Assembly: GCF_006345805.1 (NCBI RefSeq)
Contig: NW_021832783.1
Coordinates: 1 to 32,834, forward strand
Length of the DNA stretch: 32,834 nucleotides
Origin: Octopus sinensis
Lineage: Eukaryota
Reading direction: 5' to 3'
A program made the position numbers and the translations under genes. The notes under the pieces are model-generated. The model was not told the DNA's origin, made no database searches, and saw nothing but the letters and a program-made list of their open reading frames with translations. This document shows positions 1,943 to 32,834 of the stretch, one piece after another (positions within the stretch are counted from its first letter, which is position 1; each line of letters begins with the position of its first letter).

Positions 1943-4343
1943 TCAAATTCCATAAACTTTACGTATAAGACAAGTCAGGGACTGTTGATCGTACTTAAAA
2001 TACTTAGTCGGCGTCGAAGAAAAGGAGAATCTGGCATAACTCATCACTTCCTGCTGATACTTCTTTACAACGAGTGCACAACACTTGGCACAAATATCCT
2101 TCCGCTGTTGAACGTCGGCCAAATACATATTTCCATGAGATCTGGCAATATCCTCCAAATCCTTATTAAACACCTACCACAATAACATGCACTCAGTCAC
2201 ATTAAACATGTCTTTAATGGCCTTCCGTTCCCGCTCCCTCAACTATAAAATAATACAATTTAAAAGACAACTTCTGATCCAGGTTTGTATACATCAATCT
2301 CAAATGGCTTGAACAAATGTTCCCATCTTTCATGTATAATAAACAATGTACATTTGTAAATATTCCCCCTCAAACTTGGCAATATTCTTGCTTATTCTAC
2401 TCTTGGAGTCCTCCAATAGTCGAATTGTGATCTTATCCCTACAAAATCGCCAAACAAGACATACCTATCACTCGTCGGGGAAAATACCAGAAAGGACAGA
2501 TTCCTCAGAATATATGTAAAATTGTTCATTAGAAACACATTTCTTATCCCCGAATCGCCATAAAGGGTCGCTTTCTGCAGGAGATTGGCCTCCAAAGGTG
2601 GAGAAATCCCTTCACTGCCATTCAACCAACCCACCTACCAATAAAATCGACAACATTAAGAGTGGCAGCAGACAAGGACACGTCCGAACCTATCAAATGA
2701 GTCAAGAAAACACATTTCTCTGAAAAGGAGACTTCACTCCGCCTGAGATAGTATATTTTCAGACACTCCCCCACGCTCTGTTTATTCTCAAATATTATTT
2801 TTAGAAACGGCATTGTCTGAATGGACTTATTATACCAATACCTTGGCAGCCAACTCATGCACATTCCCGTCTGGGGGCATTGAGGAGTTGTTTATTGGGT
2901 CAATCTGGCAATTTATATGACAGAATAAACCCTTATCAACTCCAGTTGTCGTTCCATGATTTTTCCTGCCATGTTCTGCAGATCGATGTATAGGAAAGTT
3001 ATTTTGGACGAAAATGCCTCCAATGCTTTAAGATTCTGATTCTTTTGAACACAAGTCTTGAAGCCTGACTCAATTTCGTTTATATTCCTCAGACCACCCA
3101 AAAGGGAGGATAAGGCGGTTGAAATCCCCTCACATGTTGCCAATGTTATTATCAAATTGTCCAATTTCTATATTTTATGTTTAGTTCTCCACCTTGGAGT
3201 CACTTTCGAGTGGTTCAAGTCGAGGAATAATTATCATTTTGAATATTTGATTCACAAGCGACTTGCCAAACTGGGAAAAAGTGGCTTTAATAAGATCGAG
3301 CTCAGTCTCGGCCAGAATGGTCAAATTATACAAAGACTGAACCAGCAAATCGACACTAAAACCATCCAAGTCCCCCACGTTTTTACGAATGGCAGCCTGC
3401 GAGGCGTTCAAAGGGGAAAATTTTGAAATATTCCTATCACATAAAGTCACAACAAATACTTCAAATGTGAGAAATTACGATAACTGGGACTACACTATTG
3501 GAATAAATAAAAAGTACAACTGAAGCAGGAGTCTGGTGGGTTGTTTCTGGTCGACTAGTCGTCCGTAAACACTCAAATCTCGCCGTCACAAATAAATCCA
3601 TAAAATAGTCCAATTTACTCTTCAAATTGACTTTAATCCAGTTATAAGAATTTGCCAATTTATTTATTTTGTCGGCTGACCGTGAATAATATCCAGCCAA
3701 ATTATTTCGCACTGAAAATCTAAGTCGGGAAATACCCATAAAATTGATTCCCGCGTCGTTTTGTGGAATTCCGTGGTAGTTCCGAGAGCGGGAAAATGAT
3801 TGGGGAGTGTTTGTGACAGAATCAGCAGTTCTGGACATAAAAATGGACTGATCGGGAGTAAAATTATCCTTAATAAAACAGATAATGTCATTTTCCAGCT
3901 TAGAAACAAGCGAATCGAATAAAATTGCCTTTTTTGGTGAGAAATAAAATACAGCGGTTTTAGTCTCGATGGATTCCGGACGATTGGAATGGAAAAAGTC
4001 CTTCGCCTTATTCACAGCATCCAAAACACTGATCATTTCAGAGAGATCATTGCTGGATGACATTTTTGTTATTAAATATGCCTTATTTTGTCGACTCCGA
4101 TCTTGTTTATATTTTTGATGACCTGATAGTGGAGGATTATTGAATCGGTCTGTTTAAGGGCCTCCACGTAGGCTGAGATGTAGTGAGAGAAAGATATACC
4201 ATGACAGTTCAGTTGAGAAAGGAGGATTTGTCAAATATGCACGAGAATGAATCTTCAATGCTCTTTAGTTGAGAGGAAAATGACTCTAATGTAGCTACAT
4301 ATGCGTTTGTCGAACTGTCAATGTTAGCCAAAAAATCTTTCAT
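1943..4343 (-). CDS. EXOC7: Exocyst complex component 7 (Exo70), about 13 short introns
   Basis: The spliced product has Exo70 motifs in order: TLESFSSQLKSIEDS; LDAVNKAKDFFHSNRPES; MPPDGNVHEL; LEANLLQKATLY...VFLMNNFTYILRNL; VYKPGSELRERERKAIKDMFNVFNKDLE (human VFQPGVKLRDKERQIIKERFKGFNDGLE); KYFKYD. It needs one extra A near 4213 and one GC-AG intron (4053-4081). Confidence 0.9.
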
Positions 4344-4677
4344 TAAATTCAATCTATCTGTATACTATAAATTAAACATAATTTGTGATTATTTAACATT
4401 TGGATGATCAAACTTATCCATCCACACACCAACAGGAATTTTAAATTTGTAATTTTATATGAATTAGTATTATTTAATTTATGACAATTTTAGTTAACAT
4501 TATTTTTAACTAATAGAATTTAAATTTCAGAAAAAAGATTTAAAATATTCTATTTCAATATTCTATAGTGTAGAAATAATAACAGTTCAGAATTAAATTT
4601 AGTAATTTTACTATAATTTAATTATACTATAATTATATTATTTTTATATTAATCAACGGTCAACCTAATATAATAAA

Positions 4678-5784: not shown

Positions 5785-6320
5785 TGGAACTTGGATCGAT
5801 GTCAGATAGACATTTGACTTTTTCGATCAGAATTTATATATCACGTGCTTTCTCAGTCCGGAATTCCGAACGCAAATTTTGTGAAAACCTTAATCAACAA
5901 ATAAAATATTATTTTGAAACTCAACAATAAAAGGATTGAAACTGTAAAACTGGGAAGAGAAATCCGGCAAGAAGATTCACTCTATGGATCCGTTAAGTAT
6001 GATCTTAAATATGAAGTTCCGGAAGGTGTGTCTAACCAAAGTCATCTGCTTGCGGTCTTATATTTGACAAACTATTTGTTGTTTATTGAAAACGTGAAAA
6101 TAATTGGTGAGAATGAGAATATTGTTTTAAAAATGATGAAAGATTTTTTCGATGTTTTTTGCTTCAAGAGGGACTCAGAAAAATCTCAGACCAACTTGCA
6201 CTATGTGAAAGATACAAAATGTCTGTATGACTGCGTTGGGCAACTTTACCAGGGAGTTCTGGAGGATAGAAATATCAACGTCAAGAAAAACGAAGTAATG
6301 TGACCAATTGCTCGCAGCTA
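5785..6320 (+). mobile_element. Degenerate internal RT fragment of the R4-like retrotransposon family found at 15.5-17.7 kb
   Basis: Colinear at DNA level with about 16628-17190 (tggatcgatgtcaga..., aattttgtgaaaac..., ggatccgttaagta..., ctatgtgaaagatacaaa...). The catalytic motifs are eroded. Confidence 0.8.
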
Positions 6321-7884: not shown

Positions 7885-8133
7885 CAGGGGTCTCCAAACC
7901 CCGGCCCGCCATGTGATTTAATCCGGCCCGGCTGTTATAAATATCTTTTTTTGGCAATAAGAAAGGAAATAGATTTGTTTCTCATAAAGAAAAACTGAAA
8001 AGAACCACTTTTGTCAGACACAGAATGGCTTTGTAGATTGGCTTTTTCGTGGACATTACAGGCCATATGAATGAATTAAATCTCAATTCGCAAGGTTAAT
8101 TTATTATATTTTTTATACCATTTCCTATACTAA

Positions 8134-8393
8134 ATGGGAATTAACGTCAAACAAAGTGGTATTAACGTCAAACAAAGTGGGATTAAGGTCAACTATGTGG
8201 GATTAAGGTCAAACAAAGTGGGATTAACGTCAAACAAAGTGGGATTAAGGTCAAACTATGTGGGATTAAGGTCAAACAAAGTGGGATTAACGTCAAACAA
8301 AGTGGGATTAAGGTCAAACTATGTGGGATTAACGTCAAACTAAATGGGATTAAGGTCAAACTATGTGGGATTAACGTCAAACTAAGTGGATTA
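8134..8393 (+). repeat. Tandem array of 12 full 21-bp units plus a partial (left TIR)
   Basis: Consensus GTGGGATTAA(G/C)GTCAAAC(AAA/TAT/TAA). Units start at 8134, 8156, 8177, 8197, 8218, 8239, 8260, 8281, 8302, 8323, 8344 and 8365. There are no spacers. Confidence 0.95.
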
Positions 8394-8678
8394 CGTTTAT
8401 TATAAATATTATATTTCGACGCAGCAAATAAAAATGCCACGTAAATCATTGGAAGAGAAAAATCAAATGCATAGAAATAAAATACATTTAATTTCAGCTG
8501 CAGAATCAGGTGGAGATTGGAAAAAAACAGCACTTGAACTCAATATCCCGAGAACAACGAGAACAATATAATTGGATGCATCTCAAATCTAGGACTCATT
8601 TACTGTAAAATCCGAAGGGGAGCTTTTAAAAAAGAGCAGATATGGTTAACATAAAATTTTAAAAAAAGAATTTTTGGT

Positions 8679-8815
8679 GTTAATCCCATTTAGTTTGACG
8701 TTAATCCCACATAGTTTGACCTTAATCCCACTTTGTTTGACGTTAATCCCACTTTGTTTGACCTTAATCCCACATAGTTTGACCTTAATCCCACTTTGTT
8801 TGACGTTAATCCCAT
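8679..8815 (-). repeat. Inverted tandem array of 6 full 21-bp units plus a partial (right TIR)
   Basis: Reverse complement of the same unit variants as the left array. Confidence 0.95.
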
Positions 8816-9193
8816 TTAGTATAGGAAATGGTATAGTTTTGAAGGTGAATATGCTCTTATTTGTGATTTATTCACAGATGTCAAGGCATTTAGGTAAAAA
8901 CTAGTGCTTTTTGGAAAACAACTCAAAAATAAAAACTGTTCATTTCGCATTTTGCGAAAATTTCTGTAAAGAAAACGTTTGTAAATTTCCTGTCGAATTT
9001 GGTACCCAAATAATTAAGGATTTGAAGAAACAATTTCTTAAACGATTTTCTGACTTTAACAAGAGAAACGATGAAATAAGGTTTTTTGATAGTTTCATTC
9101 ATTGAAGGTTATTTTAAAATCCTTTTCAATGCGAAGCCGAAACTATTCCAAGTTATCTTCAACTTGAAATAATTAAACTCCAATCAGATAATA

Positions 9194-10719
9194 TGTGACA
9201 TGGGCGGCTGGATACGTATGGGCAACCGGTTACATTTTTGACCTTGTAGATGTCAATTTTTAATCATCGATAACTTTGTTTCCCCTCCACTCTAGAGCCA
9301 GTCGGTCTCTGCCGGAGTGATGGAAAGCGTCCTGACGGGATGACTACCTTCCCTTTCAGGGAAGGCAAGTCCCTGATTTGGGACGCAACTTGTGTTGACT
9401 CGTTCTCTGCGTCGGTGTTACTCAAGTCCATCACTAACCCGGGTTCCGCCAGTGCTCAGGCTGAAGAGGCTAAGAGGTCGAAGTATGGAAATATTTCGGA
9501 CTCTTACGAGTTTGTCCCCCTCGCCTTCGAAACATCTGGAATTGTCGGCAGGTCTGCGACTCGCCTTCTTGCCAACATTACCAGGAGAATCGCCAAGAAG
9601 ACCAACGACCGGAGGGAGACGAGCTGGCTCTTCCAGCGAATCTCGGTCGCAGTGCTCCGCGGAAACTGCCACTCGATACGCAGTGCGGCGACTTTGAGCT
9701 GACCTCCAGGCTCTTTATTAATTCGTGTATAACTTATTCCCCATTTTAATTAAATATTTGTTATAAAAAAAAAACTTGAAAGAATAATGCATTTTAACAA
9801 AAAAATTAAAATTAATCATTTTTTTAGTCTTGCCATTGGTACCGTCCAAATCTCTCCTTTATCATATTTTATCTATTAAATAAAAATGATTGATTTGCCT
9901 CGACTCGATTATTTGATAAAATGTTAATTATTTCAGCGCCCGGATAGAAAGGAGACTCGAATTTATCCATCCCCTGTGTACGGGGATTGTTTGGTCTTCC
10001 ATGTATCTGAACTAGATTGAACTCTTCGCATAGATCTCTCAGAGACACATTCTTGAATTCTGAACCATTATCTAATTGCAAAATTTTTCAAGGTCTATAT
10101 AGGTAGAAAAATGATCTTAAGTTGTTGCATACTTCTTTTGAAGATTTATAAAAAAGTGTTCTGACAAATGCAAATCTGAATAAATTGTTGAGAGACCTAC
10201 TACCAACCTACTATAACACCTACTACCAACCTATAATTATTACAAACTTTTTTAGATCTACAAGATCTAGCTGAAACCTTTCATTCGGAGAAGAAGCAAA
10301 GATATGATGATTCATATCACCAACCTAAATTAAAAATTAAAAAGAATTAAAACTTTCAATGGACAGGCAAATTTACATACTTCACAATTTCGAATGACTT
10401 TTGTGATTTGTTTACTCCTCCGTGTGAATATTCGTGTAGAGATTTAGCTACATGCTCCATTTCAGTTTCGTTGTCAAAGTAATACAATCTGTGCATTAAT
10501 CGTAAATATAGAGTACCTTTCATTGATTATTGTAAAATTCTCGATCTTTTTTATAAGTCTATATTTTGCTTGCCTAAAAAAATCTTCGGGAATTTATTTT
10601 CCAAAGCATCTTTTAAAATTCGATACTCTGAAGAATCTTTGACATAACCTCTATAAGAAGCCATTAAAAGGTCAAAAAATGTAACCGGTTACCCATGCGT
10701 ACGCGTTGCCCATGTCACA
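9194..10719 (-). mobile_element. Ginger2/Tdd-like DNA transposon (KRBA2/SCAND3-type integrase pseudogene)
   Basis: About 54-bp imperfect TIRs TGTGACATGGGC...AACCGGTTACATTTTTGACCTT with TG...CA ends and a 5-bp TSD TAATA (9189-9193, 10720-10724). Excision restores the hAT frame QSDNILKDKY. Minus-strand integrase motifs: LHEYSHGGVNK, ERFQLDLVDL, ILQLDNGSEFKN, IHGRPNNPRTQG. Confidence 0.8.
9277..9774 (+). mobile_element. 5'-truncated CRE-like non-LTR retrotransposon (REL endonuclease end plus poly(A))
   Basis: Open frame LEPVGLCRSDGKRPDGMTTFPFREGKSLIWDATCVDS...AEEAKRSKY...FVPLAFETSG...FQRISVAVLRGN, followed by A10 at 9765-9774. Visibly more GC-rich than the flanks. Confidence 0.85.
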
Positions 10720-11165
10720 TAATATTCTGAAAGATAAATATGAAAAACAGAATATTATTCAATTTTATAAATATTTAAATTCTAATCAATTTCCAATTTT
10801 GAAACGATACGCATGCGGATTTATATCTACTTTTGGTACAACATACCTTTGTGAACAAACATTTTCAAGAATGAAATATGTAAAATCCAAATATCGAGCA
10901 ACTTGTCGGATGAGCACTTAAAGTTGCTTTTGATAATCGGAACAACAGACTTGACGCCTGATTACAATAAAATATATAAAACGAAAAGTCAGTTTCATCA
11001 TTTTCATTAAAAGCTAATGTTTAAATCTTTCTTGTTATTCTGTCTTTTTAGTCGTAGTTAAAAAATTAGGAACATTATTAAATCTAATTGATTTTACACT
11101 ATGGCCCACGGTCATCTACCAAATATTCTATCCGGCCCGCGTTGTCAAAAGTTTGGAGACCCCTG

Positions 11166-15470: not shown

Positions 15471-17749
15471 GTGGATACCTCAGATTACTTATTGCCAAAG
15501 ACAGAAATCTCCATTTATGGTAAATGCAAGGAAGAGTTTAATCTCCAAATTCAGGAACTTAAGTCAATCCCACGAAATGCGAGAATGCCCACAAAGAAGA
15601 TTCCGTATAAATTGCTAAAGACTGATGTTCTTGTCGCAATTAATGCAGTGATTTCGAACTATATTATCTTCTCCGCCTGCAAGCATAAATGAAATCACGG
15701 ATATAATTTATGCCGGGCAATGCTCATATGAAAACATTACGAGGCAACCCCTAACAAAAAGCACATGGCTTGAGGATACGGAAAGAAAGATTTCCAAACT
15801 TAGAGAAAATCTAACTTTCGTTAATAAGTTTAATGGCCAGCAATCTAAAGACGAAAAAGAGAAGACACTGAACATTTTATGCTCGTTTGGATACAAAAAA
15901 TCCAGAGAAGGGAGAGCTGGCACGCGTATCTAGTCTTATTGAAGATAGAGTCAAAATTATGGAGAAAAAAATCTCAACCTATCGCTCCAGAAAGTCGTTT
16001 AGACAAGATAATTTCTGTTTTGAACTAAACAGGAGAAGATTCTATCGAAGACTGAATGTGAAAACAAAGATTCTGATTGTCAAGTCCAGAAGATAAGTGT
16101 CTATCTTTCTGGAAGGGCGTATGGAAGAAAGAGGAGAACCGTGCTCCTAAAGCTATTGTTGGTAAGCATATTACTGGAGCTGAACAGCTTCCAAGTGACG
16201 TGAAAACTGATTTTATCAAGAATGTTATCCAGTGTGTACCCAATTGGAAAGCCGCGGGTGTGTGACGGAGTTTATGGATTTTTTATCAAAAAGTTCGAAG
16301 CTCTTCATGGCCATTTGTGCGATGAGATCCTTAAAATGTGTGAACGGAGGCTATTCCCCTGCTGAGTGGTTTTACACAGGAGTAACATACCTCATTCCAA
16401 AAAATGAAAAGTGCCATTCCCCAAATGACTTAAGGCCGATTACCTGCATGCCTATATTGTACAAACTTGTCACTAAAGTGTGAATACAAAGCTTACAGAC
16501 TATATCGAAGCGTTTAACCTTATCTCGGATAATCAGCTGGGAGCTAGAAGGCAATGCCAAGGCGCAAAGGAACAAGCACTAATAAACCAGTGTGTCAATA
16601 GTGAGTATGGAAATAACTTATTTGCAACGTGGATCGATGTCAGAAAGGCATTTGATTCTGTCAATCATGAATTCTTATGTCAAGTGCTTGATCAGTCTGG
16701 AATTCCGAATTGGATCACAAATTTTGTGAAAACTTTAATCAAAAATTGGAATGTCATTTTGACACTTAACAATAAGAGAATTGGAACTGTAAAATTGGAA
16801 AGAGGAATCTTACAAGGAGACTCACTCTCTCCACAACTCTTCACTCTGGTAATGGATCCGTTAAGTAGGAGCTTGAATATGAAGTTCCCGAAGGTGCGTA
16901 TAGGTCAAAATGACCCGTTCACGGTTTCATATTCAACAAACCATTTGTTGTTTATTGACGACCTGAAAATAATTGCTGAGAAAGAAGACACCGTTCTAAA
17001 AATGATGGAAGATGTCGATGAATATTTTGATGCCGTTGGCCTCAAGGGAACTCGGAAAAGTCTGCGACTAACCTGGACTATGTGAAAGATACAAATGTCT
17101 GGATGGTGTGCTGGGTATCGATACCTGGGAGTCTTGGAGGATAGAGGAAGTGATGTCAAGAAATCGAGGTAATGAAAACAATTGCTCGAAACGTGAAAGA
17201 GAGAATCGAGAGTCTTGCAAAAAACAAAGTTAAGTGCAGTAAACCTCTTTAAAGCGATAAACGAATATGCACTCTTCTCTACAACTACTATATTGGATTG
17301 ATCGACATTGAACCGAGTGAGTTTGATGCCATTGATCTGGTAATTCGTCGCATTCTAACTACTTTACGAATCCATCTGAAGCCCGCTAATAAAGAAAGAT
17401 TATATTCGGCAGAAATGGTTTTGGAAGAGGCTTAATCTCAATTTCCAATAAGAGCGAATGCATCCTGCTCCAATTTCTCTCCGACCTTGAAAGAAAAGCC
17501 TCGTTGTGCCTCAGAAGAGCAGGAATCTGGCGGGTCTTGAGAGAAAAGAAAACACATATGACCACGATTGCAAGATTTCTCGCTCTCAAGTACAATCTGG
17601 AAGACCAATCAAAATTGGATGTAAAACTTATTAAGGAGTGCCAGAAGAAAAGACTAATGGACACCATTAAATCTAAGATGATACATTCAACGCGCTGTTT
17701 AAATGCATTCAGGAATAACGTTAGTAAAGTTATCTCGCTTGTTATTTAA
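15471..17749 (+). mobile_element. R4/Dong-like non-LTR retrotransposon RT ORF, frameshifted, 3' endonuclease end missing
   Basis: RT subdomains in order: NWKAAG, TYLIPK...RPITCMPILYK, NQLGARRQCQGAKEQ, WIDVRKAFDSVNH, GILQGDSLSPQLF, HLLFIDDLK, YRYLGV, KLSAVNLFKAIN. The clade call is by resemblance only. Confidence 0.85.
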
Positions 17750-21658: not shown

Positions 21659-22168
21659 TTAATATAATTCTGGTGGAGGTTGCTGATTTTTCTTAATTTT
21701 TGAGTGAGCCATCAAATTCCTTATGTCGAGAAGGACGTCCTTAATCCCACACTTTCTGTTCCAATTCCTCAAGGTGGGGACCTCACTAGTAATAACCTGA
21801 CTAATATAATCAGTTCTAACTTCCCCCGTCTCCATCCTTACACATTTCAAATTGATTTTTGTACGGAATTTGACCAGAGGCGGTTTCTGAGGGTATTTAG
21901 ACCCACATTCGATGGCCAGGGAGTACGTGTTGTCCTCGTAGGCAGACTTGGGAGTCCAATAAGTAGGAAAAACCTTGAAAGGGCCCATGATGATCCCATT
22001 CCAGTGGGTCAGGGTCGTGTCAGAACTGTCACAAAGTCCCCAACTAATTGTCCCGTCTCCAAAACCTTTTTCAGAAAGTTCAAGTTCGTCCAAAAGCTTA
22101 AAGTTCCGAGGTACCTCTGAGGATATGTCAGCATTAGGACTACCAATTGTGCCAAGATTTGATCTCAT
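21659..22168 (-). CDS. UBE2V: Ubiquitin-conjugating enzyme E2 variant (UEV1/MMS2)
   Basis: VPRNFKLLDELE..KGFGDGTISWGL, WNGIIMGP, YSLAIECGSKYPQKPP.VKF.TKIN, QPP. Removing introns 22117-22143, 21947-21973 and 21797-21820 restores the family spacing. Confidence 0.95.
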   Translation of the reverse strand: MRSNLGTIGSPNADISSEVPRNFKLLDELELSEKGFGDGTISWGLCDSSDTTLTHWNGIIMGPFKVFPTYWTPKSAYEDNTYSLAIECGSKYPQKPPLVKFRTKINLKCVRMETGEVRTDYISQVITSEVPTLRNWNRKCGIKDVLLDIRNLMAHSKIKKNQQPPPELY

Positions 22169-23736: not shown

Positions 23737-23789
23737 CACCAGTGAATGTTGAAAAATTTATTAAAGTTAAAAGTAATTTTGTGGTTAAT

Positions 23790-24434
23790 ATAAACAAAAA
23801 CATTGAAATTAAGCTGATTTTTTTAGCGTGGTTTATGATTCTATTTATGGTTTCAAGAATCTTCGTTTACTAAATTAATTGGCTCAAATAATGAAATAAA
23901 GGCCAATTTGTCATATAATTTGGGAAACAATTCTTTCTCTACTTATGCACCACAAAGAGTCTGTATGCTTAGAAAATTGTTGCTCAGATTAATATTTTAA
24001 ATTAAAATAACGAAATTCACATCCAAAGCTTTAATGGTTTAATCCAAGATAAATCGAGATTAGAAGCATCTTTAATTCTAATTTGTCAATTAGTCTCAAT
24101 AATGATTGCAAAAAAGCTGCACATAATTTTGGGGAAAAGTTAATTAAACCGGCGGCTAATTTTTCTTATTTTTAGGTGTCAGATGGCGAAAGAATTCCCC
24201 ATTTTTAGTAAAACTGCATTGGAATTAATACTTGCATTCCCAACTACTATCACTGTGAAGTGTCCCGTCTGACTTTTCTAAAATGATATGCGAGTAGTTT
24301 TGTCGAACATAGAGCCTGACATAAGTAAAATTATTCACAACAAACAAGATCAGAAATCTCACTGAACTATTTTGATAATTTTCATGTTATTTTTATATAA
24401 TAAATATTCGAACATGTCTAAACCTGCCCCTGAC
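23790..24434 (+). mobile_element. Internally deleted Charlie/ZBED5-type hAT remnant
   Basis: N-terminal piece KKAAHNFGEKLIKPAA is joined to C-terminal KEFPIFSKTALELILAFPTT and EPDISKIIHNKQDQKSH*. The end resembles a hAT TIR (...CCCCTG at 24427-24432). No TSD found. Confidence 0.6.
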
Positions 24435-24490
24435 GAGCCTAACCAAACAATTATTTGTTTATTAAAAAATGAATAAGTAAAATAAAAGGA

Positions 24491-25514
24491 TTAATTTATA
24501 AATTCCAATCCCTCATACTTCGAATCAGCAAATTTAGTCTCTTGGTGCAAAATATTTCCCACCAAGTCAAAAATAAGAAAATACGAAGCCAAAACTCCCG
24601 CCATTTCCTCAGTCTTGACAGCCATAATAACCCTGTCCTCAGAATCCGGCAGAAAACGGAAAGCAGAGAAGCCCCTCGTGCGACACAAATCCCCCACAAT
24701 CACCACATCAACCCTCTCAAAGTCCTCATCCGCAATCAACAAATAATTCCCGCCATTCGATGCTTCTCCCCCCTGCGAATACCCCTCCATACTCACAGCA
24801 CGTGGCAGAAAAAACCAGTGATTGTGCACTTTACTCCACACAACTGCCTCGTGAATCACAAACCCAGGATGTTCAATCAAAAGGCGCGAACTCAAAGCCA
24901 AATATTTTTCCCGCCAATCGACGTGGTGCACTTGTCCATTTTTATTAACAATTTTAATCCACATTGGGAACGAATTTAAAACTGTCCCTGTCGAGTCAGT
25001 GAAGACCTTTCCGTACCCACCGACGTAGAGGAGCCCGTTTTTGACGGTGGACCACTCCCCCTTGAAGGCTGTGGATAAGCCATAGGGGACTTACGGGCAG
25101 GGGAAGACCCGTCTCCGTCAGTCAGTTTGACCCAGACAGCCACAGTGCTATTTTCGGGGAAGATTTGGTAGATAATTCCTGTTTGTCGTCGATGGCCAGG
25201 AGTTTTCCGTGGAAGGTGATCAGGTCGGAAAGTTCCATTCCACGGTTTCTGTGGAGGATTTTTGAACATAGTTTTTGTGGGGAATTTTTAAAGTTGATTG
25301 AAAAAAGTTGGGATTTTGTATCCCAGATTAATATTCCTTCGAGGAATTCGCTGCATGCAGACTGGCCTGGAAGGATTTGGATGTCTCTGTCAGAAACCAT
25401 GGCTAGTTTTTTACGAATTCGACGTTTGTAGGGGATATTGGTCCATAGTTTGTATAATATTAAAGAAATAAGTACTATAAAGAGCATCAATAGGTTCCTC
25501 ATTTGATGGTACAC
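24491..25514 (-). CDS. CANT1: Calcium-activated nucleotidase/apyrase (CANT1, Cimex-type), type II membrane anchor
   Basis: N-terminal hydrophobic anchor, then NRGMELSDL, IDDKTGIIY, GDG, FKGEWSTVK, LYVGGYGK, IHEAVVWS, WFFLPR, RGFSAFRFLP, KTEE, KYEGLEF. One 26-nt intron; one missing A at 25182-25184. Confidence 0.93.
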
Positions 25515-31994: not shown

Positions 31995-32500
31995 TCGCCC
32001 CAAACTCGGCTCCCTACTTGGAGATAGTGAAGACATTTCTCGCAGAAAGATGCTACCACGGCTCTGAGCAGAATACGTAAAAAATGGCCCTCAGATCAAA
32101 GCTTTATAATGCATTCGTAAAGACTGTTCTACTATACAACTCGTCAACATGGGGGATCTCGGAGACTGAACTGAAGACTATAGGCTCTTTTCACCGTAAA
32201 CAACTACGTCTCTTACACGGAATATACTGGCCATCAAAAATTAACAATCTATCTCTGTATAAACATTACGATGCTACCCCGTTGTCTCAAGAAATTGTTG
32301 GAGGCCGGTGGAAATTATTTGGCCATATTTTGCGAATGGACCCCAGAGCTCCGGCCAATCGGGCAATGAACGATTATTTCTCCGAAAATGGAGACAAATA
32401 TCGTGGAAGACCTAGATCCACTCTTCCGGCAATTCTGGAAAGGGATCTCAAACTTCATGGCAAAAGTTTCAAAAACTGGGACGACCTGGAATTCATGCCT
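31995..32500 (+). mobile_element. RTE-like LINE 3' fragment (end of RT and thumb)
   Basis: KLGSLLGDSEDISRRK, KLYNAFVKTVLLYNSSTWG, FHRKQLR, RWKLFGHILRMD, RGRPRSTLP..LERDL. Confidence 0.8.
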
Positions 32501-32599
32501 AGGGGAGTAAAATCAGAAATTTTATTATTCGTTTCTAAAAATAAATACATCATTTTACTTTCAAGTTCATCTTCTACAAACGAGACCTCATATTTTAAT

Positions 32600-32834
32600 C
32601 TAAATTATAAATGAGCTTATAACTTGTATTTCATGAATCACACTGTTAATTCCAGAAATAATCCCAAACTTTTTGAAAAGGGTCTCATTGATCGCCGAGT
32701 AATGTGTCGTATTATAGGAAAAAGTAACTTTGTCTAAAAATTGTTGCCAATTTTTAGTTCTTTTTTTATCCAATAGTTTTGGCATAGCTCGTGTCAATGT
32801 TTGATTAAAGCGTTCAATTAAACCCTGATTTATT
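32600..32834 (-). mobile_element. Integrase core (rve) C-terminal remnant running off the window end
   Basis: NQGLIERFNQTLTRAM...NWQQFLDKVTFSYNTTHYSAINET matches the QG..ER.N.TL...W...L..V.F.YN...H motif. Confidence 0.7.

Follow-up and report, generated by a model that had tools for sequence, protein, structure and literature searches.

Results

A 718-bp element with arrays of a 21-bp unit at both ends

The window, by which we mean the whole stretch of 32,834 nucleotides analysed here (contig NW_021832783.1, annotated as Octopus sinensis), has a GC content of about 34% and contains LINE fragments; Rfam and tRNA scans of it were empty. A CANT1-like apyrase gene in the window is interrupted by a GT..AG intron of 26 nt and shifted in frame by 1 nt at a homopolymer; the best protein matches of the apyrase exon are just 46% identical. 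A UEV gene carries an in-frame 27-nt intron, and its canonical length returns once this is removed.

The feature studied here is an element of 718 bp at positions 8116-8833, with a TA on each side when the sequence is read directly (8114-8115 on the left and 8834-8835 on the right). We read these dinucleotides as the two copies of a target-site duplication; duplication as such, and recent mobility of the window copy, are inferred. The element opens with the 13-nt motif TACCATTTCCTAT (8116-8128, plus strand), which matches the conserved tip of relatives described below and is probably the cleavage-proximal sequence, and it closes with the reverse complement of this motif (8821-8833, minus strand), identified by complementarity to the left end. 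The outer 26 nt, TA counted, are complementary at 100%, which leaves perfect termini of 24 nt without the TA. Exactly two matches to a terminal sequence of 23 nt are present in the 32.8-kb window, one on each strand, against an expectation of 0 from 100 shuffles.

Internal to each tip lies a tandem array, delimited by Tandem Repeats Finder and unit parsing. The left array (8129-8393, plus strand) consists of 12 full 21-bp units and a partial 13th, and the inverted right array (8674-8820, minus strand) of 6 full units and a partial 7th; Tandem Repeats Finder itself reports period 21 with 12.4 copies at 8135-8393 and with 6.8 copies at 8679-8820, and in both arrays a 63-bp period outscores the 21-bp one, with 93% matches. 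Matches to the unit core GGGATTAASGTCAAAC number 12 on the plus strand and 6 on the minus strand (expected, 0.03). Left units 4-6 are identical to units 7-9 at 63 of 63 positions, and right units 1-6 correspond to left units 5-10, with 97% complementarity across 148 nt. In the left arm, an insertion (+1) in unit 1 is cancelled by a deletion (-1) in unit 3, so that the register is restored and the offset of unit 4, 85 nt, equals that of the right arm. A 114-aa ORF on the minus strand, for which an exact look-up gave no match, merely reads across the repeats and is an artefact of the array.

The preliminary description of this DNA had given much of this anatomy: the coordinates and build of a 718-bp element with TA flanks, the 12 left and 6 inverted right units, and the trimeric order of unit variants, with the right arm repeating the order of the left, all hold. 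It had also assigned the element a unique terminus of 18 bp; the terminus is indeed unique, but its length is 13 nt in the framing that holds across relatives.

Three collinear remnants of a transposase gene between the arrays

An exhaustive phmmer search of the 45-aa peptide encoded between the arrays (ORF 8434-8571, plus strand, 45 codons from an ATG start) against 1.84 billion representatives returned one strong match, P0024 (XP_029657496.1), a 351-aa protein annotated as 'uncharacterized protein LOC115231662 [Octopus sinensis]'. Over residues 1-42 of the peptide, 37 of 42 residues are identical (88%, E = 4e-15). By itself the peptide found nothing in Pfam beyond HTH_8, below threshold, and a word-indexed homologue search and an exact look-up were both empty. 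The peptide had been put forward as a route to an autonomous partner, and it led to a transposase homologue with an intact DDE domain.

P0024 is encoded at an O. sinensis locus, L001 (L039 when widened), where two copies of the element are separated by 5 bp. The transposase copy, the nearest that looks autonomous, has a left end consisting of TA, TACAATTTTCCAT and then five degenerate 21-bp units; on its right side are about five units, and the tip is missing. The second, non-autonomous copy is 420 bp long and has the left tip, the 3′ tail of the gene and, confined to the right side, 15 units. The genes around P0024 in L039 are all transposon-derived.

Comparison of the window element with L001 by blastn resolved its middle, said in the preliminary description to hold only an HTH-like transposase N-terminus, into three collinear pieces of a parental gene. 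The first (8394-8558, plus strand) comprises the 5′ UTR and transposase codons 1-42 and corresponds to L001 ~3955-4125; the alignment that holds it runs from 8273 to 8558 in the window and from 3849 to 4125 in L001, at 82% identity. It is followed by the first deletion junction (8549-8566, plus strand), at which the L001 homology skips from 4125 to 4569 and Tandem Repeats Finder detects a 9-bp tandem filler, CGAGAACAA present twice. The second piece (8566-8638, plus strand; L001 4569-4641, 93%) covers codons ~190-214 (IIGCISNLGLIY..RGAFKKEQ) and is out of frame with the 45-codon ORF; its frame 2, compared with P0024, reads IIGCISNLGLIYCKIRRGAFKKEQ. The third piece (8640-8673, plus strand), past the second deletion, holds the last codons, the stop and the 3′ UTR, and aligns with L001 from 5034 onward as well as with the non-autonomous copy (L001 3450-3629, 86%). 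The three collinear pieces thus show that the window element derives from an autonomous element by internal deletion. The features of a MITE or non-autonomous deletion derivative are all found: a length of 718 bp, three collinear remnants, and termini and units that match those of the L001 transposase copy.

The partner is a DD34E transposase with two N-terminal helical modules

P0024 scores 83 bits against Pfam DDE_3 (PF13358) and 111.9 bits against the NCBIfam IS630 profile (NF033545; curated cut-off 100), with residues 24-286 aligned. In an alignment of 16 homologues D156, D239 and E274 are invariant and form a DD34E triad. Pfam matches to HTH_23 and HTH_28 are weak; the AlphaFold model (pLDDT 77) has two N-terminal three-helix modules, residues 6-49 and 66-111, joined by a conserved RGG linker, followed by an RNase H-like core. 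In a Foldseek search of the PDB with this model, full-length Mos1 transposase ranks first (E = 5e-12); the catalytic domains of Sleeping Beauty and SETMAR match with TM ~0.7, and the TnsB and Hermes end complexes are distant fold matches. By phmmer against the PDB, P0024 finds Sleeping Beauty only (E = 0.18). P0024 is ~23% identical to reference catalytic domains of the DD34E and DD38E types, which were taken from PMC8533490 Data S2; two mosquito DD34E references in that set, perhaps Gambol, are 23-33% identical to it. Its motifs read DNAPxH and PYSPMLNPIE, as against DNDPKH and PSQSPDLNPIE of the Tc1 type.

Diverged relatives share the end plan

We collected P0024 homologues at 42-52% identity and scanned metagenome contigs with the family alignment. 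Arrays of 20 or 21 bp flank the transposase gene in L001, L002, L003, L005, L006, L011, L012, L014, L016, L018, L019 and L021, and one end plan is common to ten or more diverged relatives, with proteins 34-52% identical. When units are stacked, this plan reads TA, then the 13 nt YACCWTTTCnnnn, then contiguous multiples of 21 bp from nt 14. The tip, YACCWTTTC plus 4 nt, is present in L002, L003, L005, L012, L014, L016, L019 and L021. L002 has 20-bp units, 6 on the left and 2 on the right; L012 has 8 units on the left and 8-9 on the right, with matches of 97% and 89%; L014 combines 6 units with a 63-bp higher-order period; and L016 and L019 have arrays though their proteins are just 34-35% identical. 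In 14 of 15 ends, autocorrelation at lag 21 (20 in L002) ranks first, or second to 42. Looser repeats with a spacing of about 20-22 bp are found in an oomycete relative (L009), and three dispersed rather than tandem repeats in L010 (30% identity), while the flanks covered by the contigs of L013, L015, L017 and L026 hold no array.

TA stands directly outside the terminal motif at 15 of the 15 ends of the window copy and relatives, in agreement with the TA flanks anticipated for other copies. On the window copy alone, TA and TATA duplications are equally possible. The four-base version is ruled out by the non-autonomous copy of L001, whose end reads TA followed by TGCATTTTC: the inner TA of TATACC is therefore the element's own, and the duplication is TA, not TATA. 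Candidates for any duplication longer than TA, compared in the window copy and relatives, gave no match.

The sequences of the units are lineage-specific (ACTAAATGGGATTAAC.., TCAAAATGGAATAGTG.., TCAAATTCAGAATTAAC.., TCAACTTGGCAATTATC.., GCAATTTAAAAGAAAGTG..), and the period and phase are constant. Common to the units is a core, nCWAAnTGRGA, at positions 2-11, and the 3′ third is the most variable; in stacked units, the 5′ half is conserved as nCWAAnTGRGAWT and the 3′ half is variable. The constant start at nt 14 and the cancelling +1 and -1 indels of the window copy fit a constraint on register.

Unit number, which the preliminary description had singled out for comparison among copies, proved very labile: left and right counts are 12 and 6 in the window copy, 6 and 2 in L002, and 0 and 15 in the non-autonomous copy of L001. 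This lability implies that many units are dispensable and that the array may in part have expanded neutrally. It also favours the main rival explanation, by which the arrays are neutral or selfish minisatellite growth inside inverted repeats, Foldback-like, and only the 13-nt tip and the first unit matter. That explanation would account for counts that differ widely among arms and copies, down to a copy that has 15 units at one end and none at the opposite end, and for higher-order periods of 63 and 42 bp, which are typical of unequal exchange. It fits poorly with a 20-21-bp period kept across no fewer than ten lineages despite the divergence of their unit sequences, with the constant start at nt 14, with units conserved in one half and variable in the other, and with the occurrence of arrays in copies that have intact transposase genes; on balance we consider it unlikely. 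Preservation of the plan in diverged relatives identifies the arrays as a family trait, and, as far as sequence comparison can indicate, they are most likely transposase-binding sites, set in phase.

Foldback potential and the 45-codon ORF

As single-stranded DNA the element is predicted to fold at -200.7 kcal/mol (z = -20) into an interrupted stem of ~175 bp, and the foldback potential proposed for it is thus real. Such a stem, and an ORF that retains its ATG, could be taken as signs of a domesticated or regulatory locus, acting through small RNAs from the hairpin or, as the preliminary description had suggested, through the 45-aa peptide, which would repress or titrate the autonomous transposase. 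However, the same folding is expected of any element with long inverted repeats, and there is no Rfam match. The peptide departs from the family past residue 42, within the predicted recognition helix (helix 40-49 of the model), and lacks A43, Y44 and W46, positions with little or no variation in the family alignment; it is therefore unlikely to act as a DNA-binding repressor. Moreover, the end of the ORF was made by the deletion junction with its 9-bp filler, and neither the exact peptide nor word-sharing relatives were found elsewhere. We regard a regulatory locus as highly improbable, and the suggested titrator is not supported; the 45-codon ORF, as we read it, is a remnant, a by-product of internal deletion.

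Classification and comparison with known systems

The attributes of the IS630-Tc1-mariner group are all present in the family: TA duplication and terminal inverted repeats, together with a DDE domain and a bipartite HTH in P0024. The window copy itself is without a catalytic domain, and the DDE attribute is judged on P0024. The assignment to the Tc1/IS630 superfamily at TA in the preliminary description is borne out by the DDE_3 match, the IS630 profile and the DD34E triad of P0024. The strict Tc1 family (DD34E/Tc1) does not include it, given the 23% identity and the differing motifs. The NF033545 score denotes an IS630-like lineage rather than a bacterial insertion sequence, the host context being eukaryotic.

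The element had also been called Foldback-like, which is apt for its shape and wrong as to kinship, since it is no relative of Foldback, Galileo, Phantom or Merlin. Affiliation with Foldback, P or Merlin was ruled out by the length of the duplication and the cognate DD34E transposase. That the element belongs to another superfamily with repeat-bearing ends (Foldback/MULE-like, Galileo/P or Merlin) and has TA flanks by coincidence, as its unequal arms of short tandem units might suggest, has a negligible probability in view of remnants collinear with a DD34E IS630/Tc1-type gene bearing the same termini and units, of TA at every end examined, and of the absence of a 7-9-bp duplication around the window element.

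Within the same superfamily, the IR-DR Tc1-like elements (Sleeping Beauty, Minos, Paris, S and Bari3) resemble the window family in their TA duplication, in a transposase with paired-like HTH and DDE domains, and in long inverted repeats that bear two or more direct repeats for transposase binding at each end, three in the case of Bari3 (PMC4120734, PMC8834629). They differ in having 2-3 sites separated by 100-200-bp spacers, whereas the window family has 4-15 contiguous putative sites with a 21-bp period that starts at nt 14. Bacterial IS630 elements have DDE_3, a PYSPxLNPIE motif and duplication of a TA target in common with P0024, but their inverted repeats are short and simple. The window family, in contrast, carries arrays, and its members come from eukaryotes, namely from a contig annotated as octopus, a UniRef entry of a nematode, and an oomycete.

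Non-autonomous, foldback-shaped derivatives of the Tc1 superfamily with TA flanks, mobilised in trans, are familiar from C. elegans as Tc7, Tc6 and PALTA-type elements. Their long arms are not known to be phased arrays of short units, and in sequence they are unrelated to the window element. Arrays of ~22-bp transposase-binding sites that differ in number and spacing between left and right occur at the ends of Tn7 and Mu, and Hermes has subterminal repeats; such arrays are platforms for multimeric transposase assembly. These systems are prokaryotic or hAT, with unrelated DNA-binding domains and 3-4 sites as against up to 15, so that the likeness is one of analogy, not homology.

The best published functional analogue of the arrays is Galileo. 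Galileo and Foldback belong to another transposase superfamily (P in the case of Galileo) and make 7-9-bp duplications. Like the window element, Galileo and Drosophila Foldback have long, unequal, internally repetitive inverted repeats; their units are larger and not fixed at two helical turns. In Galileo, multiple binding sites for the THAP domain within the inverted repeats have been demonstrated experimentally (PMC3688188). In the literature that we searched, no IS630-Tc1-mariner family with tandem-array ends is described, although a Repbase or Dfam consensus may exist. The array-ended clade is thus apparently undescribed, and the earlier surmise of an undescribed repeat-array family with a two-helical-turn period now extends to a whole clade, autonomous copies included.

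Host context of the window

The ultrashort introns, the GC content of ~34% and the LINE fragments make the window look like an animal genome of the dicyemid type, dicyemids being parasites of the octopus kidney. They fit Dicyema japonicum, collected from Octopus sinensis, the genome of which has a GC content of 36.7%, introns of 38 bp on average and a repeat share of 49% (PMC6736024). The sole close relatives of the element that we found are in the O. sinensis assembly. The 3′ end of another element, hAT/GTF2IRD2-like, is a second repeat in common: positions 23752-24437 of the window match L039 19115-19915 at 78-84% identity. Two DNA transposon families in common with an O. sinensis contig point either to horizontal transfer between host and parasite or to cross-contamination of assemblies. 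Tetranucleotide signatures did not separate that contig (L039) from the window, and tblastx of reverse-transcriptase fragments gave only ~40% identity. No octopus-annotated protein similar to the window apyrase was among the matches, which counts against wholesale contamination. The literature that we searched held nothing relevant on transposon transfer between dicyemids and cephalopods.

Discussion

We propose, with a probability of roughly 80%, that the window element is a non-autonomous IS630-Tc1-mariner copy inserted at TA, the ends of which are clade-wide arrays of putative phased transposase sites. Its parent was an autonomous element of ~1.4-1.9 kb encoding a transposase of ~351 aa, with two N-terminal HTH modules and a DD34E domain. 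Two internal deletions of the interrupted-gap-repair type formed the window copy. What they spared is the two ends, codons 1-42, a mid-gene piece of 73 bp and the gene's 3′ tail, and the copy relies on transposase provided in trans.

In the model that we favour, the bipartite HTH domain of the transposase would recognise the nCWAAnTGRGAWT half of every unit, and the 21-bp spacing, equal to two turns of B-DNA, would set successive protomers on one face of the helix. The arrays may thereby raise the local concentration of transposase and its cooperativity at the ends, and the unique 13-nt tip would place the catalytic protomer for cutting beside the TA. Array length would drift through slippage or unequal exchange among units, processes that would produce the duplication of a 3-unit (63-bp) block, the unequal arms and the variation between copies; in the window copy, such a block duplication would have led to 12 units on one side and 6 on the other.

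A more far-reaching pair of linked readings, which we advance tentatively and do not hold to be the probable outcome, is that the transpososome assembles on a phased filament at the contiguous 21-bp sites, and that the window is dicyemid and records horizontal transfer of this family, along with a hAT element, between the parasite and its host O. sinensis. If true, end recognition of the filament type would be new for the Tc1/mariner superfamily, and it would explain why period and register are conserved across the clade.

Tc1/mariner elements are the textbook 'simple' transposons of eukaryotes. Gene-delivery tools, Sleeping Beauty among them, derive from these elements, whose ends are thought to hold between one and three sites for transposase. 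A deep clade with helically phased arrays of 4-15 contiguous sites would, if true, amount to a natural experiment on how the number and phasing of sites bear on synapsis, on overproduction inhibition and on competition between autonomous and non-autonomous copies. Short oligonucleotides and a protein of 351 aa would suffice for a direct test of the model. The two transposon families common to a parasite-type genome and a host assembly, at ~80-86% identity, would, if not contamination, reveal a marine route of host-parasite transfer. More generally, these ends suggest that minisatellite-like arrays can arise from, and be kept by, protein-binding sites.

Possible target preference and phase of the repeat arrays

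Among 15 TA-flanked transposon ends from the window and from relatives, a C lies directly outside the TA at 12 (in the window, in L001, the locus of the annotated P0024 transposase, and in L002, L003, L012, L014, L016, L019 and L021, which carry relatives of its gene), and a G therefore stands on the opposite side. This pattern suggests a palindromic, CTAG-like target preference. The tip of the array element, the 718-bp non-autonomous copy in the window, contains the motif CCATTT (window 8118-8123), the reverse complement of the AAATGG found 8 nt further inward in the first unit (8132-8137), and L012 and L002 show this pair at the same positions. CCATTT could represent an inverted half-site placed at the extreme end, or the match could be due to chance.

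In the outer part of the left array (window 8129-8200), one base pair is inserted in unit 1 (GGGAATTAAC) and one is missing from unit 3 (GGTCAACTATG), so that, counted from the tip, the units fall back into their 21-bp register. It is a single case, but one that hints at selection on phase. Higher-order periods were found in the arrays of L014 (1204-1326; 63 bp) and L016 (244-406; 42/64 bp); since such periods recur in unrelated lineages, duplication of blocks of two to three units is common in the family.

Related copies at other loci

The O. sinensis contig carries at L001 a 420-bp non-autonomous copy (3408-3836) whose 15 units all lie on its right side, none on its left. It is only 5 bp away from the transposase-bearing copy, which lacks a right tip. 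In L013 (SPKZ01001861.1), 17 nt of the array-element unit recur exactly (AAATGGGATTAACGTCA, ~505-522), as an isolated match with no detected array around it. The transposase gene that follows ~280 bp downstream shares only 47% identity with P0024.

Other mobile elements and the genes of the window

A separate element of ~1.5 kb has inverted repeats of ~48 nt at window 9192-9239 and 10675-10722 (ATGTGACATGGGC...GGTTACATTTTT) and is unrelated to the array element. It contains a 120-codon ORF (9340-9702) that had no match in a Pfam search. Retrotransposon debris is abundant in the window. Positions 16480-17085 contain a fragment of a reverse transcriptase (RVT_1), and the ORFs at 5914-6303 and 32084-32614 look LINE-related, though neither has a Pfam match.

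The introns of the host genes are ultrashort: one of 26 nt with GT..AG borders lies in the apyrase gene (24497-25283, minus strand) at 25078-25103, an in-frame one of 27 nt in the UEV gene (21670-22120, minus strand) at 21947-21973, and the CID-domain gene (160-924) shows a gap of 24-41 nt. An A-run of the apyrase gene is also one base short (AAAA to AAA, ~25182, minus strand), which shifts the frame between ...AIDDK and TGIIYQ...; either the gene is a pseudogene or the assembly contains a homopolymer error here. The short introns, top protein matches of only 46% identity, a GC content of ~34% and the LINE fragments give the window the look of a dicyemid genome (compare Dicyema japonicum, PMC6736024).

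Transposon families shared with the octopus contig

Contig VCDQ01002078.1 of the O. sinensis assembly and the window have in common two unrelated DNA transposon families, at 78-86% nucleotide identity: the array element (window 8114-8835; 9400-11200 in L039, the widened P0024 locus) and the 3′ end of a hAT/GTF2IRD2-like element (window 23752-24437; L039 19115-19915). Tetranucleotide signatures did not separate the window from VCDQ01002078.1. D. japonicum was sequenced from the host O. sinensis (PMC6736024). The sharing of two families implies either horizontal transfer between host and parasite or contamination of one assembly.
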